Shown here in pieces: positions 4,622 to 14,704 of a stretch of DNA of 64,000 bases (within the stretch, counting starts at the first letter, position 1; each line of letters starts with the position of its first letter). Below the pieces are notes generated by a model. That model was not told the DNA's origin and did no database searches. It was given only the letters and a program-made list of their open reading frames with translations. The position numbers and the translations under genes are program-made. Source of the stretch: Auanema rhodensis (Eukaryota > Animalia > Nematoda). The DNA lies in contig OZ059896.1 of NCBI GenBank assembly GCA_964057225.1, forward strand, positions 16,430,001 through 16,494,000, read 5' to 3'.

Positions 4622-7481
4622 CAGCTTTTCCAATTCAGCTATCTCAGTTTCTTTCTAGCATGGCATTTTGTCCTTTTTTCAACTCATTCCCATATTGATG
4701 TTATTCCTTCAAATAGTTCTTGTTCAGTTCTATATATTAAATTCCATGTTGTTTCATCAGTTGGTTTATGATGTTTGTACAGAAATATTCTGAACATTCA
4801 TTTATTTTCACTACAAGTTTCATATGAGAAGAAAAAGGAGGAGAAGGATGAAAACTGATGGGTGGTGGGGGAGGAAAAGACTAATATGAAAGCTTATCGT
4901 CATGATGGCATATGAGAGAACAGTTTGACTTTTCTCATCCATTCAACATATATTCCATAAAGCTATTTAAAATAATAAGTATTATGATAATATTTGAATA
5001 ATAAGTTTTCATACGTATTATCTGTTTAAATTTTTGGACGATAATCGTCCGCTTTCAACGAGATCGAGCAAGCTTCACAACATCATACAGCAACATGATG
5101 TCATTTAGTTGAAATTACTAGATCATAACAGTTAAAATCTTAATTCTTTTATTCATTTTCTTGTTATTTTTGTTGTTTCATTAAAGATATTCGTTAGAAT
5201 AATAATACGTGTTATCTACATGATTAAGAAGTTCTTCACATGTTACACCACATCAACACAATCAGCTTCACATATGTCATCGGCTTCTTTCATCATAACA
5301 AGTAGTTCAGGTAAAATGATTGAAGAAATAATATAAATTAATAAGATATAGGGAGAGAAAGAGAGAATACTAAGGCTTCATATATACTATGAAAATATAA
5401 AAATAGTTAAAATCTACAAGTTCAATGATAATAGATAAGATGAGATTAAATTTCTATTAATTTTCAAACTACTACTTCATTTCATATATCCTTTCTTGAA
5501 TCACTATATGTATATAGTCTTCATAGTACGCTTCTCACACATGTTTTCAAGAATTAAATAAGAAATTTCCATTTTAATTATATAATATCTGTATATTGAT
5601 GTCATCATTGCTTGTTTATTCATTATTTTACATTAACTACCTACATGCATACATGTACATACGGTGTGTTGTATGTACAAGTATTTCAGAGGTCATGTAA
5701 CCTTGTTCTGCTCTCAACTTCACTTACCCGACTTTCAACTCCACTCCAATCTCATTTTCTATATTTTCTTCTTGTTGGAATCATCGTCACTCGCACGTTG
5801 CTCTGCTTCATGATGTAGACAAACAGCTCAAGAGCAACATCCAAATGCTCGGTGGAAAAATAAATTTTTTTCTCGACTTCCCTCTTGAATAGGGTCTGGT
5901 CACATAGAGTAAGCTTTCTTGTTTTCTTGATTTATTTCATTTTATTTTCTCATTTTGACTTTCCCATTTAATCTCTCCTCTAAAGGATCTTCTCTTTCAT
6001 TATACATTATTTCGTATTAAGAAAAAAACTCTTCTTATATCATCATGGTTGGTGCCTTTATTTCAAATTTTTTTGCTTCCTGTCAGTATGTTTATGTGGC
6101 TTTTTCATATAAAACATGAAAGAAACATCTATGGAAACAAGATATATGGGAAGAAAAGAGTTAAAGTTGTAGAAAAAACTGTAGAAAGAGAAGAGAGAAA
6201 GGATATATGTATGCGATTGTAGCGTACAACGCCAATATGAAAACATGATTGCTTTTTGAAGTGTTCAAGATGCTACTATGGGCAACTAAATCTTCCAACC
6301 AGGTAATGAAAATAAAAAAAATGAAATTAAAAGATGAAAGCCCTTATATTCTCAAATAAATCTTGTTCTGGTAAAAATGGAATAGAGAGGCATAGGTGAA
6401 AGTTGATTCGTGTGAGGAGACCAAACGAATGATTGAAAGAAGGAGGAGGGTCGGAAGGGTCGAAGCCATATCCAGCTCATTTTGCCCTTTGTGCTTTCTA
6501 TCTCTCTTTCTCTCTTTGTCTCTATCTCTCTCTTTCTTTTTCTTTGTCTTATTTACAAAAGCTTGTGTAGATTATTAACCAACTTTTTCTTTCATTTGTT
6601 CAATTTTCTTTTTATACTTTTAAACTTATTTTCAGAATTCTTCATACATACGTTTCATAAAACGTATGATATCTGTTCTTCAAGTTGAAACACACGTGTA
6701 TTTCTAGATGATTACCAGAATTGCACAGAAATTATTCATTAGATCTTGAAAGAAACCGAACTTTCAATTCAAATTAAAATCTTGAAGATTGAAAACAAAT
6801 AGATTTTACTAATAAGGGATGAGCGAGATAGAGAGAAAGAGAGGGAAAGGGAAAAAGAGAGAGAGAGAAAGCGAGGGAGAAAAATAACTGTTCTCTGATA
6901 ATATTTTCAAAATGTGTTCTTCTTCATATATTTACTTCCTTCGCAATCATCATGTATGTTTTTTTTAATATTTTTATCTTATTTATTTAAAAATAAAAAA
7001 TAATATAAAAAGAAATGTTTTATCAAATCTTTCTATATTAATTTTTATTAATTATAATATTTTATTATATGAAATAAGGAAGAATATTAAAGAAGAATAA
7101 TACATGAAACTCTTTTTCTTCTTCACATCATATAAATTGATTAGCTTCTATAAAACTCTTTTAGAACTTAGAAAAATGTACAAATCGGATGGCCATCGAA
7201 TGGAGTTTTGCAATTCAACTTTGACATTCATCATTTTCAATTTCTTTTTTTTAGTTCTTTCTTTCTTCTTTTTCGCCTTCTTTCATCTCATTTTCGTGGT
7301 TTTTGTCTGAAGTTTAAGTCAATTCCTTCATCCTCATTATCGTTGTTGAAACTTTTCTTGTATTTTTCTCGTCACACTCGTAATTTCATTCGGCTTTCGG
7401 AGTGTTACTTTTATATTTTTGTTTCTTGATCCATTCATCCATCGCTTTACCTAACTTTGCCCTCTTCTTGTCCACTCTTTA

Positions 7482-7637
<156 letters not shown>

Positions 7638-8664
7638 ACGATGTCTAAACGGTTGTTAGTAGCCCTGTGGGACCAGAAGGTTGGATGAGCTTGTTCCAAA
7701 TTTACATAGAAAAAGGAAATATGTTCCAAAAGAACAAAATATGTTGGATGAAAATGGATTGAAGGGCATTAGTTGAACCTGACCCCATATGACAAAGTTT
7801 CACTTGATGTAAGTCGTTTGTCATGTTTCAGCAACTTGATCAGTATCGGGATTATTCAACTTAACAACCATTACCATGAATTCTTCTGAGAGAAACCAGG
7901 TTTACTTTGTGTACTTACTATCATACGACGACGTCAACTTGTTGATAGTTTCATCTACTCCTTCTGAGATATTCGTTGTTTTCAAGAGCTAAATACAAGA
8001 TATGATGACCGTCAAGTATCTTAATACCTCATCATCATCTCAAGAAACAGCAGAAATCTTTCATATATTTGAATTTCAAATCAATTTAAAAGAAAATTAC
8101 CTATGTCTAAAACCTTTAACTGAAAGCCTAATTGTTTTTATCAACATGATTGTCAGCTTAAGCTGGTAAACTGAAACATAGATTTCTCATAATACTCTCT
8201 AATTAATTTTTAAGGCCAATATTTTCTTTTTTTTTTTTCGATTTTCAACTCCTTTCATCTATTAACCGTTGATCTTAAACATCAGTGCCTTAACTCATTG
8301 CTTCTTTTTTCGAATATGAAGAACATGTTGTGTTTAACCTTATATCATACCGCTATTTGTCTCTTAGGATCTCTAACTTTAAAACTTTGTCAAAGATCCA
8401 ACCTAATTGCCGCAATCCAATTACTATTGAATGCTCTTTACACCATTTGTCTTCCAGCTCCAAGTGACGAGTTGATTCCATCTCACGTGTTCTGTATCCA
8501 GTATTTTCTTACGTCATAACGCAATTTTTACATTTTTTGTCTTCTCATTTGTGGTTTTTTATTTTAACCCATTTATTTTAATTTGTATGTCTTTTCGTCT
8601 TTCATTACTATTCTCTTCTTTTATATAAAAATTGAATTGTCCCTATAACGAAATATCTTCAGGA

Positions 8665-11600
8665 ATGCGTCCCAACTCCTCTGGGGATTGGATAGATGTA
8701 CAGTGTGATTGGTTCGATACAGTGAAATCAAGACAGGTACGAAAATTCTTATAGTTAAATTCATTTTTATGTATATTGAAGTTGAAATCGTTAATTATAC
8801 AATATAGTATATGGATCATACGGGTATTGTATGATTTCTCATTGGAATTATATCCTTTTTAAGATTTTAACTTATGTTTTAGGAGTAAAAACTTGATATG
8901 CCCATACTCCAACTTGCTTAAAAGTTTATAAATAGACAAAAGACATTTGATCTTGATCATATAAAAGTCGAGCGACTAATAGTTTCTAGTTGGTTGAGTT
9001 TATGCACAGCAAATGAGTCCATCTGCATTTTTCTTTTCTCATAATTTCTTCCTGTTTCTCATTCAATTGTTTCAACTTATAGTACTCTCATATATTTCGT
9101 TTAGTCTTCTATTCTCTCTCCCTCAGGCATAATTGTAGGCTCTTCTTAATCTGTCTCCCTTGTCGTTAAACGTCGAAGACGAAGCAACAGTTCATGAGAG
9201 ATGACAGAAACATCTGCTAAAAGGAAAAAAAGTTTAAATTTTAAGAAAACGTTGTTGAAAACTTGAAAAGAATATGTTTTCATTACATGCCATCATCAAT
9301 AGAATTATATAGACTAGATATTTCTTTGTGAAGACAAGTTTTTCAATATATTCAAAGATAAGTCAATCAGTAATTAAGATCCTCAGATGTTTTATGATCA
9401 ACAATGAGAATTCAGTACAACGGAAATAAAGAACATGAGTAGAACAGTTCAAGAAATGAGACCCAAAAACAATAAGAAATGAATGTGGCAGCTTATAAAT
9501 TATGATTTTTGATCAGAAAAACAGCCGCAGCTTTCAGAATTCTTTCTATTCAAATTATCCTTACATTAAACGTCAAAGGCATTTTCTTTGCTCTTTTCCG
9601 CCAAAAAAAAGTTTTCATTTTAAAGTACCTGTCACTGAACCGTGCTCTATTATGAAAAAGGGCAACCAAAGTGAAAATGTATTATGCTTTCTCTCTCTCC
9701 TTTTCCCATTCTCTGAAGAATTCTTCAATTTAAACTAATCTGTACATGTTATATACATGTTATATATATTATATATTATGTTATAAATGAATTAATCTTT
9801 AAACAGTGATTGAGGAGAACTGATATGAGTGTTTGGCTCAATTCTACTTTTAGAAAGCAAGTTTTACCCGTTATCAAGTTTTAGTTGAAACAACATTCGA
9901 AATTGGCTAGTATAATCGAATATTATAAACTAAAAACAACAAAATCTCTTTCAATATAAACTATATTTGATTTTATTTGCGTAAGAATATTATAAAATAA
10001 CGTCATAATGCGGACTATTCTCACCCTTGGGTATAAGCTTGTCCATCTCACAAACTATTCAAACAATTGTTCCTTTTCCTAATAGTTAACTACTAGAAAG
10101 GTTGGCGATTAAAGTTATTTAATGTGTCTACTAATCATACCTAAACAGGTAAATGCTCATAATTGCCAGAGTATTGATCAATCTGTCAAATATTATGACA
10201 TACTATACTCATATGAGTTATTAATATGTGTATATTTATAAATAAATTTTTATAAATATCGGATCATATATTGTGATCTGGCATCACTCAAGATGGACTT
10301 ATATATGTTGCCATGACATGAATGCATCCTTCCATCAAAATGAAAACCTTCAACAACCGAGAAGGAAATTACTTCTATCGAAGAGCAAACAATATTTACC
10401 CACCCATATCACATACGATACTTAATGAAAAGCACTGGCTCGTTATGTTGCACATGCATCCTCTGGTTCCTTTGCAATTCTCCGTGAAAATCTTTCGCCT
10501 TTTACTAAAGATTTCCGTGCATAGGGACGCATATGAGTAAATTCATTTTTTGGAATCCCCTCGAAAGAGCGGGAAATAGTTGTAGATGCCAACAAGGTTG
10601 TTTGTGTGGAGTTGTTGGGAAGTTTAAGGTAGAAGGTCTGATTGAAAATAGTTTGAATCTTATTCGTTGTTTTAAAAACATAGAAATTATTTCAGAATTT
10701 CAACCATTTTATCACTATATTCTACGTTTCTCGAAAAGAAAAGTAATCTTATATCATAAAGGTAACTGATGACATACTATATGAGAAAATGAGAAAAAGC
10801 TTACGGCACCCGGGATTCCCAAGCCGTCTCCGATCCAAGTACTAACCGGGCCCAACGTTGCTTGACTTGCCAGATCGGACGGGATGGCGTACTTTCAACG
10901 TGGTATGGTCGTAAGCGAATGCTTACCTTTCTTTTCGGAATATGTATGCAGTGCAACCGTTCGTTCTAGTTTGATTTTGAAAATTGACGTCTTTTCACGT
11001 GGAACATTCTTCCATAATATGCAAATCAGCCTTATCAGGCATTCAAAAATTGCGTATATCACCCATGTTTCAACACATGAAGACCGCTTTCTTAGTTCGG
11101 AACAGCGCTACACTCAACTCAAGTACGTCACAGCTAAAGGTTCAGGAATTTGGTACATTTCCAAAACTATCCTCTGGTTCCTTTGCAATTCTCCGTGAAA
11201 ATCTTTCGCCTTTTACTAAAGATTTCCGTGCATAGGGACGCATATGAGTAAATTCATTTTTTGGAATCCCCTCGAAAGAGCGGGAAATAGTTGTAGATGC
11301 CAAAAAGATTGATTCAAAGATAGAATTCAATTGTACATTGAAATATTCAAAGAATCAGAATTTGACTTAAAGTCGAATCCTGTAATAAAACAAAATTTTA
11401 AAACCTAAAATAATTTTCTATATACAGAGTATAATTATTTTTATAAATATTATATGGTAGCTCCTTAATAAATAGGAAAAAAGCACAAATAATAACTATA
11501 TTTATATTTTAACTTCAACACAAAAATATAATTTTAGTTTCAATTAGATTCCATTTCTACATTTTTTCACGAAAGAATAAGAATCACAAAAATCCTTACC

Positions 11601-14600
11601 CCGGCAATCGTTTACCATCTGAAGAATTTTTTCCACTTTATATGGAGTTGATATTCTATCGTAAGAGTTATTTATCTTGGCTTCTCCACTGCTCGGAAGA
11701 TAAACTTCCTCAACCTTTCCATTTACCACTGTTGCCATTTTGCTTCCAGAAAGAGAAGTAATTATTCCGTAAATCTGAAAAATAAATTTATAAATCTCCA
11801 AATGAATTATAACAAATTCTTACGTCTACTCCTAATTGGATAATAGATCCAAGTTCCAAATGCTTGATAAGTTCCGATATAGTCATGAACGCCGTTTCTA
11901 ATGCTATAGTTCCAATAGACTGTGAGGTAGAAGCAACAGACGCCATTGTAGAAGCTACACTTCCCATTGTTGTTTTTCTAAAATTTAAAAAGATTCGATA
12001 ATAAAATGTACAAAATCTTGAAACGATAGATACGTAAAGGCAGCACAAAACTGATAAACTCGAAAATTTAAAAACATTCATTTGCTCATTTATACATTAA
12101 TGAATCTTTAGCGACTTGAGCTTTGCTTACGAGATAAATTGTTTATTAGAACTGCTGGAAGACTGATCGGGGCCGTCAACCATACGCGTAGCACTTGGCC
12201 ACTCTCTTTGTGACCGTACCGACACCAATTAGCAAAATGTTCACAATTGTTGCCTAATGTATGGTAGTCGTACGGTCCAAGTGATTGCTTGGCTCTTCTT
12301 ACTATTTCTTCAGGGGGATATGGTGTATATTTTTTGTCCAAACGGTTACGGATGATAACATCTCGATTCCCAGCATATTCCGCAACCAGTTGCCTAATGA
12401 CTTGATGTTCATTTGTGACGTGAATCATGTAGACATCATCTCCGTTTACTTCCACAATTATACCGAAATGCTGAAATTGAAAAAAAACTTTTACATCTAA
12501 ATTTCAACAAAAACTCACTTCAAAAAAAAAATTGACGCCGATTTCTATGCAGCTTCCAATTAGTTCCTTGTTCGTATATTTCCTAGTGATTTGTTCAGCC
12601 TTACAGGTATCGGCAATAATAACCATCTTAAATCTCCGTTATAATATGATAAGAACCTTCTTTAAAAGTTTATAAAAATCAACAAACATGTTTATTTTGA
12701 ATAACATAACCCTTGGTTATTCTCTCAATGTCGGCAAAGGCCAAAATTTCGAAATATTTTCTAAAATTGTTTATTATTATATGAACTAAATGTATATTTC
12801 GATGTCATGGAATCTCAATCAATCATGGAATATATTAAAGATTTACAGAATATTAAAAGAATGAAATCTTCAGTTTTCTTACAAACTTGTTTATACACAC
12901 TAGTAACAAGTTTTAATTTATAATTAACATATTATAATTTGATGACAACTTAAAAAACTTTAATATATGATATATAGTTAACTTATTGTTATTTTGTTTA
13001 GAATAATTACTATTGGGTTCGCCAATTTGATGGATCTCCAATAGTTTTCTTATATGGCATCGTATGTACATTTGGAGCTTTAGCCAACTTTTTTGTTTTG
13101 TTTGCATTCATTCGAACCGAAAAATTAAGAAATTTACGGAACAGGTGAGTACCAAAGTAGTGTTAATATTGAAAACAAACTATTTCTAGTTTTATTGTTA
13201 ATCTGGCAGCTTCTGACTTATTGCTATGCGTTGTTACAGCACCTGTAACCTTATATACTAGTGTGAATCTATTCTGGCCATTTGGAAACATCTCCTGCAA
13301 AGTGGTTAGTATTTACAAATATTTTTCTTTTGAAATACCTTATATAAGAATATAAAGATAAATAATTAAATTTTCAGTTAGCATCAGTACAAGCTGTTAA
13401 TACGTTTGTATCGTCATTAACACTAGCATTAATAGCTCTTGACAGAGTTCTTCTGACATTATGTCCAGTGAGATGGTTAGTTCGTAATGATACTTTTTTT
13501 ACTTCTTTATTGTAATAGCTTTAGTTACAAATGTTATTTATAGGCGATTAGCAGCAACAGCTCCCATTGTCTGTTATTGTATCGTGTGGATTGTATCCAT
13601 GCTAGTTGCATTACCATACTCATTAGCTGTTCGAGCTCAACAAGTAACTCATTTTGAACCATGGAATGATGCAAATACACCCGATATGGTATGCAAATAA
13701 TCAAATAGGATCATATTATTAGTTTATATACTTCTAGCTGGCTACATGTCAAGAATCTTTCCCAGAAATATGTGTCGAAATGCAAGAAACATGGGATCGA
13801 GCATATATAAGCAAGATGACATTCACTTTGGTTGTATTAGCTATACAGTATGTAGTGCCATTGGTAGCATTAGCTTTTGCTTATGTTCAAATTGGCTCCA
13901 CCATTCGTCGTCGTTCCAAATTTTCTCGAACTATTGACTCTACTCGTCGTATGAACAATCAAAATCGAAATAGGTATGTCAAGACAAGAAACCGTTTTTA
14001 TGAATTTTAAAAAGAAAAAAGTTGTATTGTCGTATGTGTCAACATTTTTTTCCATCAAAGTTTTAATTAGAAAAACTTTTAAAAAAAGAAAAAAAATTCT
14101 GCTCTCCAGTACAAAAAACTCTGCGAATGTTATTATAAACTTTACTTTCTATTTTAGACGAGCACTTTTGCTTCTGTTTCTACTAGTTCTTACATATGCC
14201 ATTTGTTGGGCTCCCATGAATGTGTACAATGTGCTGAACGGGTTTGAGGTCATTGACTATTCTCAATATAGGTTAGCTTCTACATCTACTTATCCACCTG
14301 GTTAACTATTTATTATTGAAAGTCAAAACAAAAAACGATTTTCTCAGGCTTGAATGAACTGAACATTAGCCATTTTCAGGTATCTTTTCTGCCATTTGGT
14401 AGGCATTTCATCTGCTTGTGTCAATCCAATAACATATGCTCTTGTGAATGAAAGCTTCCGAAATGCTCTGCATCATATGCTCATCTCATTCCGCCCATTC
14501 AATGCAGCAACCAGTGTAATAGCAGCTCATCCATTTACGAATGCAGTTCAGAATAAGGTCCAGAAGAAGCAGGTAGATTATAGTATGAAGTTTACTAAAA

Positions 14601-14704
14601 ACTTACTTTGAAGTCTCTTCCAGACAACACGGACCCCATTCTCTTATAACGGCGAGCAATCATTGACAGATGATATGAATGCATTGGCCAACTCAAACCT
14701 GTAA
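8665..14704 (+). CDS. Rhodopsin-family neuropeptide Y/F-like GPCR (npr-11/npr-12-like), multi-exon
   Basis: Exon 1 (8665-8736, MRPNSSGDWIDVQCDWFDTVKSRQ) is preceded by ttcag and ends at a phase-0 GT donor. It joins phase-0 exon 13002-13144 (NNYYWVRQFDGSPIVFLYGIVCTFGALANFFVLF). Later exons give FIVNLAASDLLLCVVTAPVTLY (TM2), LFWPFG, IALDRV (DRY position), QYVVPL (TM5), CWAPMN (TM6) and SACVNPITY (NPxxY). Stop TAA is at 14702-14704, with AATAAA near 14799. The exon 1 link is inferred; the rest is solid. Confidence 0.88.
10458..10576 (+). ncRNA. U5: U5 spliceosomal snRNA, copy 1
   Basis: The 5' end is ATCCTCTGGTTCCT. The stem AAATCTTT/AAAGATTT closes the invariant loop I GCCTTTTAC, with CCGTG motifs on either side. 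It has an Sm site ATTTTTTGGA and a 3' hairpin CCCCTCGAAAGAGCGGG. Confidence 0.93.
10794..10798 (-). terminator. Pol III T5 terminator of the 5S gene
   Basis: TTTTT on the minus strand immediately after ...GTAAGC. Confidence 0.8.
10798..10916 (-). rRNA. 5S: 5S rRNA gene (single copy in window)
   Basis: The reverse complement reads GCTTACGACCATACCACGTTGAAAGTACGCCATCCCGTCCGATCTGGCAAGTCAAGCAACG...TTAGTACTTGGATCGGAGACGGCTTGGGAATCCCGGGTGCCGTAAGCT (119 nt). This is the typical nematode 5S sequence with its internal control region. Confidence 0.97.
11169..11287 (+). ncRNA. U5: U5 spliceosomal snRNA, copy 2 (identical to copy 1)
   Basis: 11169-11303 is base-for-base identical to 10458-10592. Confidence 0.9.
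11544..11967 (-). CDS. Divergent LRAT/PLAAT-like protein lacking catalytic residues (putative pseudoenzyme), 124 aa, 2 exons
   Basis: Exon 11967-11824 (MGSVAS...ETAFMTISELIKHLELGSIIQLGVD), a 49-nt GT-AG intron, then exon 11774-11544 (IYGII...KINNSYDRISTPYKVEKILQMVNDCRGKDFCDSYSFVKKCRNGI*). It aligns by eye to the neighbouring LRAT gene with the same phase-0 intron position. A ttttag acceptor lies 10 nt before the ATG. Confidence 0.72.
12108..12626 (-). CDS. LRAT/PLAAT (HRASLS)-family permuted NlpC/P60 phospholipase/acyltransferase, 156 aa, 2 exons
   Basis: Exon 12626-12519 (MVIIADTC...LIGSCIEIGVNFFFE), intron gtgagt...tttcag, then exon 12470-12108 (HFGII...MIHV...IRNRLDKKYTPYPPEEIVRRAKQSLG.YDY..LGNNCEHFANWCRYG). 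It has the H-box, the second His, the NCEHF catalytic Cys and a short hydrophobic C-terminal tail. Confidence 0.9.

Follow-up and report, generated by a model that had tools for sequence, protein, structure and literature searches.

Proteins of the PLAAT/HRASLS1-5 and LRAT type (PF04970) are Cys-His-His acyl-enzyme phospholipases/acyltransferases built on a circularly permuted NlpC/P60 fold. How cells restrain the PLAAT enzymes that remodel or rupture membranes is poorly understood, and the inactive vertebrate relatives LRATD1 and LRATD2 have no agreed molecular role. The locus described here lies in a 64,000-nucleotide stretch of the genome of the nematode Auanema rhodensis (contig OZ059896.1, positions 16,430,001 to 16,494,000; this whole stretch is called the window, and coordinates given without a contig name refer to it). 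It comprises two adjacent genes on the minus strand: gene A, an LRAT-family enzyme gene, and gene B, whose product is predicted to adopt the same fold without the catalytic residues. The B family is a branch of LRAT-fold pseudoenzymes that has so far gone without annotation, and it has been kept adjacent to an active relative. The locus offers a minimal triad-free LRAT-fold protein missed by current domain models, beside an active member across nematode genera. A search of the literature for an LRAT/PLAAT gene pair in nematodes found nothing relevant, a statement that holds for the literature searched. Tentatively, and a little short of what would be called probable, B is read here as partnering the A-type enzyme in a non-catalytic role, co-expressed with it and anchored by a myristate. 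From 5' to 3' on the minus strand, the two genes consist of the following features.

12519..12626, minus strand: exon 1 of gene A, 36 codons (MVIIAD...NFFFE) with β-strand 1 of the LRAT domain, defined from the sequence and from contigs of complementary DNA (cDNA) type.

12471..12518, minus strand: intron of gene A, 48 nt, phase 0, GT..AG, immediately 5' of the His1 codon, with a contig joint between 12470 and 12519.

12108..12470, minus strand: exon 2 of gene A, 120 codons and the stop, with HFGI, MIHV, NNCEHF, WCRYG and a hydrophobic C-terminal segment.

11968..12107, minus strand: A-B spacer, 140 nt from the stop of A to the ATG of B, comprising the 3' untranslated region of A and the region upstream of B.

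11824..11967, minus strand: exon 1 of gene B, 48 codons with the MGSVAST start, a conserved ETAFM..ELIK helix and the first β-strand LGSIIQLG, defined from the sequence, the alignment with the second A. rhodensis copy (B') and the Diploscapter pachys orthologue, and RNA contigs.

11775..11823, minus strand: intron of gene B, 49 nt, phase 0, GT..AG, with a contig joint between 11774 and 11824.

11544..11774, minus strand: exon 2 of gene B, 76 codons and the stop, with IYGII, KMATV, KINNSYD..PY and DSYSF, ending in CRNGI.

The gene models and the contig joints agree with the initial annotation, which described two small two-exon genes on the minus strand 140 bp apart. Spliced full-length products of both genes were analysed in local scripts, and remote tools were given single exons or the D. 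pachys orthologue of B, P0009. The product of gene A (minus strand 12108-12626, two exons) is 156 amino acids long, and its spliced translation contains all the LRAT catalytic motifs first listed for it (HFGI, MIHV, NNCEHF and CRYG). Exon 2 matches the Pfam LRAT family PF04970 with 70 bits (E 2.8e-19, cut-off 24.3). The catalytic triad is complete, with His37 in EHFGI, His52 in MIHV and Cys113 in NNCEHF, and the same residues are aligned in the relatives. The nearest of these are nematode LRAT proteins with 53-55% identity, that of D. pachys having 53%. The C-terminal segment, residues 127-145, reaches a Kyte-Doolittle 19-residue maximum of 1.39; it contains proline and stays under the usual 1.6, and the corresponding segments of the second A. 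rhodensis copy (A') and of the D. pachys A protein give 1.91 and 1.16, respectively. Gene A has in common with PLAAT/HRASLS/LRAT proteins a full domain and the HFGI/MIHV/NCEHF triad motifs, and its moderately hydrophobic C-terminal segment may correspond to their membrane anchor. From its sequence it is predicted to encode a typical Cys-His-His acyltransferase/phospholipase of the PLAAT/LRAT type.

Gene B (minus strand 11544-11967, two exons) encodes a product of 124 amino acids. Neither exon matches Pfam, and P0009 scores 13.8 bits against Pfam LRAT, under the cut-off of 24.3. A word-index search with exon 2 returned zero matches, missing even the D. pachys orthologue, and BLASTP of the second exons of A and B is non-significant (E 0.16). 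As this pairwise comparison and the empty Pfam search are unable to show homology, family profiles are needed. Comparison of the B-family and A-family alignments by hhalign yields a probability of 93.3% (E 2.7e-7) over 86 columns, B 38-123 on A 22-122, and recovers the alignment drawn in the initial annotation, which had held that B aligns with A along its length. Residue I49 of B is paired with His1, A62 with His2 and S113 with the Cys nucleophile, and the protein stops at CRNGI with the hydrophobic tail absent; the replacement of His1 by Ile, the loss of His2, the Cys-to-Ser change and the missing tail, all noted from the start, are therefore borne out. In the family, the His1 position is Ile in B and Leu in its relatives, and the His2 position is Ala. 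The Ser at the position of the nucleophile is invariant in all five aligned members, as are the Phe that follows and the CRNG motif.

Structural comparisons point to the same fold. The nine top matches of the B-family profile among PDB sequences are all PLAAT/HRASLS proteins, the best being 4dpz (E 0.0046). An AlphaFold2 model of P0009, which is 51% identical to B and was computed with B exon 2 in the alignment, has a predicted local distance difference test (pLDDT) of 80.7 and a predicted template modelling score (pTM) of 0.74. When this model is compared with the PDB using Foldseek, the top eight matches are all PLAAT structures, with target-normalised template modelling (TM) scores of 0.52-0.69 and a probability of 1.00. 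Five crystal structures have E values of 0.001 or lower at a target TM of 0.66-0.69, the best being 4dot (E 1.6e-4, TM 0.69). Gene B is thus predicted, from profile and model, to encode a remote LRAT homologue with a permuted NlpC/P60 fold, devoid of the catalytic triad and of the tail. The B family has the fold of PLAAT/HRASLS/LRAT proteins, but B is without a tail and without any of the triad residues, terminates right after CRNG and is sub-threshold in Pfam.

The neighbourhood of the two genes is conserved. In D. pachys, the order A then B recurs with its orientation and spacing, the LRAT gene being at L007:5648-6327 and the B gene at L007:6519-6943. The neighbours of the D. pachys pair, Med19 and PA28, are found on other contigs in A. 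rhodensis (C3 and C6): only the A-B pair stayed together, and the wider gene order was lost between the genera. Between the A. rhodensis and D. pachys pairs of A-type and B-type genes, the synonymous divergence (dS) is saturated, and the ratio of non-synonymous to synonymous divergence (dN/dS) is 0.1-0.3. The same order recurs in a second copy, A'-B', in the A. rhodensis genome, 1.67 Mb away (C4:18.114-18.115 Mb). The genome search, whose gene counts are lower bounds, yields at least two B-type genes, both immediately downstream of an A-type gene. This persistent A-B neighbourhood across genera suggests that the two proteins may work jointly.

The second copy looks to be decaying, judging from its sequence, since A' carries a nonsense codon, while B' no longer begins with MG and has accumulated changes more quickly. 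A' reads CAT TGA GGT where the D. pachys protein has HWG (in HHWG), a change of TGG to TGA at codon 38 (L002:2413-2415, C4 ~18115273-18115275). This TGA may have arisen recently by nonsense mutation, may be polymorphic or may stem from a misassembly. A' is otherwise well kept, NCEHF included, with a dN/dS of 0.22-0.32 against A. B' is 58% identical to B over exon 2. To note, a third LRAT gene, C', lies about 190 bp upstream of the A' start codon and points away from it (L005:1288-1794, plus strand, C4 ~18115622-18116128). It displays the motifs PGDLIEI, HRAVAI, CRINNAFD, NCEHF and CGNG and resembles the last domain of P0013, a multi-domain LRAT protein of Panagrellus redivivus. No C'-type gene is found at the window locus.

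B is a member of an old nematode family, not a freshly inactivated duplicate of A. When 1.84 billion representative proteins were scanned with the B profile, the matches included P0009 (hypothetical protein WR25_06594), two P. redivivus proteins, P0010 and P0011, and multi-domain LRAT proteins; the alignment query added P0019, from an environmental contig (L008) of the Joint Genome Institute. The public names of these relatives are hypothetical or, for the Panagrellus pair, unrelated automatic labels (DUF727, Methylase_S). The hidden Markov model (HMM) of the B family gives 25 bits to A, 24 to A' and 22 to the D. pachys A protein, compared with 19-22 for the C-type C' and 21-28 for the three domains of P0013. 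The initial annotation had also placed the intron of B at the position and phase of that of A; this holds, both being phase 0 and before the codon of His1 or its equivalent, but not as a specific tie between the two genes, since an intron of phase 0 precedes His1 in C' as well and the position is thus family-wide. The common intron was accordingly rejected as proof of a duplication of A into B.

Divergence estimates argue for purifying selection on B, which appears to be a fairly fast-evolving protein. Its dN/dS is 0.09-0.21 against the D. pachys orthologue and 0.21-0.31 against the environmental P0019, the value between the latter two proteins being 0.38-0.53. B-type reading frames are uninterrupted in four sequences, which come from three species or more. 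Between B and B', dN/dS rises to 0.7-1.1. Tajima's test counts 21 unique changes in B' versus 6 in B (p 0.004), so that the excess change falls on the B' branch, and A versus A' is balanced (20 versus 16). The view that B is a maintained pseudoenzyme, advanced initially from its sequence, is strengthened by the intact frame, the orthologues, the dN/dS against D. pachys, the PLAAT-like predicted fold, the A-B order preserved in D. pachys and in the second copy, and the spliced RNA described below.

The RNA evidence consists of cDNA-type contigs from four public runs of one study, of which three (X1-X3) cover gene A. The joint of B, which skips 49 nucleotides, is present in all four runs, and that of A, which skips 48, in X1-X3. 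Both read CT..AC on the plus strand, equivalent to GT..AG on the minus strand. As only cDNA gives such exact intron-skipping joints, and as no intronless copy of B or A was found in the genome search, these contigs are taken to be cDNA. They are spliced exactly at the sites predicted for A and B, so that both genes are transcribed, B with the intact frame and splice sites initially ascribed to it. Over exon 1 of gene A, the contigs extend to 12641 in X1, to 12638 in X2 and only to 12623, three bases short of the ATG, in X3, all being joined to exon 2. One of them spans 12045-12641 and contains the complete coding sequence. The B contigs span 11549/11550-11979, the last codon and the stop being outside coverage. 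Contig depth is higher for B than for A in X1-X3, a difference that is not used to rank expression.

The B contigs of three runs share both ends, 11979 and, within the last codon before the stop, 11549-11550. Such shared ends suggest branch points of the assembly graph, for example where leaders vary or where alleles differ close to the C-terminus. The spacer ends with TTYTAG just 5' of the B ATG, a likely trans-splice acceptor (TTTAAATTYTAG), and the B contigs stop at 11979, two nucleotides upstream of the acceptor AG, in three runs and at 11977 in the fourth. This is what is expected of a de Bruijn assembly that branches at different leaders or at spliced and unspliced forms. Between the A contig end at 12045 and the B contig end at 11979, the gap is at most 68 nt. 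Because of this short gap and the pattern of the B contig ends, A and B likely form one operon-like expression unit. Nematode operons and the A-B pair have in common the same strand, a short distance from stop to ATG (140 nt here, operon spacing being ~100 nt), the close contig ends, the conserved spacer and TTYTAG. Conversely, nematode operons are defined by an SL2 spliced leader on the downstream gene and a polycistronic precursor, whereas the A-B operon is proposed from spacing and contig ends.

The spacer itself contains two conserved blocks, at ~12055-12017 (CAGTYTTSTGCTGC..GTATCT.TCGTTT) and at 12005-11978 (ending TTTAAATTYTAG). They are common to four sequences: the window (~12055-11978), the second copy (L002:1914-2000), D. 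pachys (L007:6410-6500) and the environmental contig (L008:1-105). The spacers of the window and of the second copy are 76% identical. Those of D. pachys and L008 are identical at 109 of 123 positions (89%), next to a B coding sequence with a dS of 0.32-0.39; the spacer hence appears more conserved than the synonymous sites of the adjacent gene. The conserved blocks may be an intercistronic processing signal or a promoter of B. A by-eye search of the spacer for the Ur-element UAYYUU found no clean match and only a short CAG..CTG stem.

The intron of B is also unusually well preserved. Three B-type introns were compared: that of the window (11775-11823), that of B' (L002:1738-1784) and that of D. 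pachys (L007:6651-6703). The B and B' introns are identical at 46 of 47 positions, compared with 63-75% in the flanking exons. The core of the B intron also aligns with the D. pachys intron (TTATAAYTCA..TTTG.A..TTATAAATYTA) with a z of 5.1, none of 5000 shuffles scoring as high. A short gene-conversion tract possibly explains the identity between B and B' but would not explain the D. pachys match. No RNA fold common to the three species was found in this intron, and the B gene of contig L008 is intronless.

The N-terminus of B provides a feature absent from the first reading, the motif MGSxxS/T. It is MGSVAST in B, MGSGPST in P0009, MGSSAST in P0019 and MGSSSSH in P0011; P0010 has MGSNNST at an internal Met30, probably the true start. 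N-myristoylation sites follow the PROSITE pattern PS00008, G-{EDRKHPFYW}-x(2)-[STAGCN]-{P}. The G-S-x-x-S-T/H start of the family fits this pattern in B, P0009, P0011, P0019 and, from Met30, P0010. B', which has no MG start, has no such motif. Vertebrate LRATD1 and LRATD2, inactive LRAT-domain proteins themselves, have a proven N-terminal myristoylation and are substrates of N-myristoyltransferase (PMC8689648). Because of this precedent and the fit to the pattern, the product of gene B may be brought to membranes by a myristate at its N-terminus, in place of an anchor at its C-terminus.

LRATD1/LRATD2 (FAM84A/FAM84B) are among the closest described counterparts of B: in both, the LRAT domain is devoid of the nucleophile Cys, and the B motif would match the myristoylated LRATD N-terminus. 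FAM84B, however, lacks the catalytic Cys while keeping H23 and H35 (PMC7140883). B retains neither histidine, and its family consists of a bare domain of 121-125 amino acids. By analogy, B would resemble the inactive LRATD/FAM84 proteins in its mode of action and its fold, yet it falls outside the definition of that family, since FAM84B keeps both histidines and B none. No LRATD-type protein is among the eight matches of the B-profile scan of 1.84 billion proteins, so that B and LRATD likely have independent origins. We know of no LRATD gene that forms a pair with an active gene of the PLAAT type.

Dead and active LRAT domains also occur together in single chains. Tandem LRAT proteins of three to five domains are found in P. 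redivivus (P0013, A0A7E4UQ07), Xenopus laevis (P0012 and P0016; LOC108699156 and LOC108700612) and Turdus rufiventris (P0014). The domains of P0013 carry, in order, the motifs NSENF, DNEYF and NCEHF, and in the Xenopus proteins a single active domain comes after several dead ones; in P0013, P0012 and P0016 the last domain alone keeps NCEHF. P0014 has no domain with NCEHF, its last domain having a Ser at the Cys position (NHSEHF). P0013 and the two Xenopus proteins resemble the A-B pair in combining dead domains (NSENF, DNEYF, DELF) with one NCEHF domain, and they are the best non-family matches of the B profile. They differ from it in being one fused chain instead of two adjacent genes, and the nematode example is C-type (CRINN...CRNG) and not A-type. 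As dead and active LRAT domains are naturally fused, and as A and B are closely linked, a role of B in regulating A gains some support.

If B is the partner of A, the two genes would be expressed as one operon-like unit, and myristate would anchor B to membranes in place of a tail anchor. B would then set where or when A remodels membrane lipids, possibly by binding to A or by filling the lipid or acyl sites that A also uses. Such a modulation would provide a simple nematode genetic system for the control of PLAAT activity by a pseudoenzyme, and would give a ready interpretation to the dead-plus-active repeat proteins of frogs, birds and Panagrellus. A more specific and unlikely version would have a conserved two-gene operon in which a membrane-attacking, tail-anchored PLAAT enzyme is encoded with a dedicated myristoylated pseudoenzyme that restrains or steers it at membranes. 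This would amount to a built-in safety catch for a PLAAT enzyme, its two parts being encoded apart in some nematodes and joined as dead and active domains of one chain in others and in frogs.

Several observations weigh against a partnership of B with A. The A-B adjacency is readable in two species only, A. rhodensis and D. pachys. The B profile scores A no higher than C-type domains, so that homology does not single out A as the partner, and the natural dead-plus-active fusions belong to the C-type and not the A-type subfamily. None of the contigs spans both genes, and the contig data show no spliced leader. The myristoylation of B is a match to a motif, and the structural model is that of P0009, the D. 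pachys orthologue. A complex prediction for P0009 residues 20-123 with D. pachys A, entered without its tail and as one chain per exon, returned a score of 0.00, which is evidence neither way. A regulator role of B, whether as inhibitor, adaptor or decoy, is plausible on the grounds of the linkage and the natural fusions.

It is quite possible, while falling short of probable, that B has a role apart from A, as a small myristoylated protein that serves as a scaffold or binds lipids, similar to LRATD1/2. The adjacency would then reflect no more than a tandem duplication that was retained, or an operon whose two genes are functionally independent, and C. elegans operons often join unrelated genes. 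The N-myristoylation of LRATD1/2 (PMC8689648) and the absence of a catalytic Cys in FAM84B (PMC7140883) parallel the MGSxxS/T start of B and its Ser at the Cys position, and the B profile is no closer to A than to other LRAT subfamilies. On the other hand, the exact A-then-B adjacency has outlasted the lost gene order, the pair was copied as a unit, and fusions of dead with active LRAT domains recur among other animals. If B does not modulate A, the locus is a well-documented but ordinary pair of neighbouring enzyme and pseudoenzyme genes.

It is very unlikely that B keeps a chemistry of its own, a changed rather than dead enzyme whose invariant Ser would serve as an acyl acceptor or as the nucleophile of a weak hydrolase. 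The Ser, the following Phe and CRNG are indeed invariant in the five aligned members, and one dead domain of P0013 also has a Ser (NSENF), but both activating histidines are replaced (by Ile or Leu, and by Ala) in every member. The residue two positions after the Ser varies (Y, H, L or K), and hence no new base is conserved. Furthermore, Cys-to-Ser changes are known to inactivate PLAAT/LRAT enzymes.

The initial suggestion of a toxin-antidote-like pair fits poorly and is now highly improbable. In such a selfish element, A would be toxic by damaging membranes and the linked B would be the antidote. PLAAT enzymes can rupture organelle membranes (PMC10760033). The pair is tightly linked and has been duplicated as a unit, and in the second copy the enzyme gene has a nonsense codon while the B-type gene is still open. 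The toxin-antidote elements known from nematodes are young and confined to single species or strains, whereas the order and orientation of A and B are conserved between genera with saturated synonymous sites, under purifying selection, and B-type genes also exist in Panagrellus. Lastly, that B is a transcribed pseudogene drifting neutrally, for which the B-B' dN/dS and the blindness of Pfam to B could be invoked, is already contradicted by the location of the excess change on the B' branch, the low dN/dS against D. pachys, the open frames, the invariant motifs, the spliced RNA and the confident fold prediction, and can practically be set aside.

Other features surround the two genes. Directly downstream of B lies an Rfam-confirmed cluster composed of a U5 small nuclear RNA gene (10458-10575, plus strand), a 5S ribosomal RNA gene (10798-10916, minus strand) and a second U5 gene (11169-11286, plus strand), the nearer U5 gene ending about 260 bp from the B stop codon. 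At 7457-7729, a long (GA)n/(TC)n microsatellite has open frames that read as poly(Arg-Glu) or poly(Leu-Ser). On the other side of the pair, at 13780-14611 on the plus strand, open frames display features of rhodopsin-type G-protein-coupled receptors, e.g. SSACVNPITYALVNESFR, an NPxxY motif.

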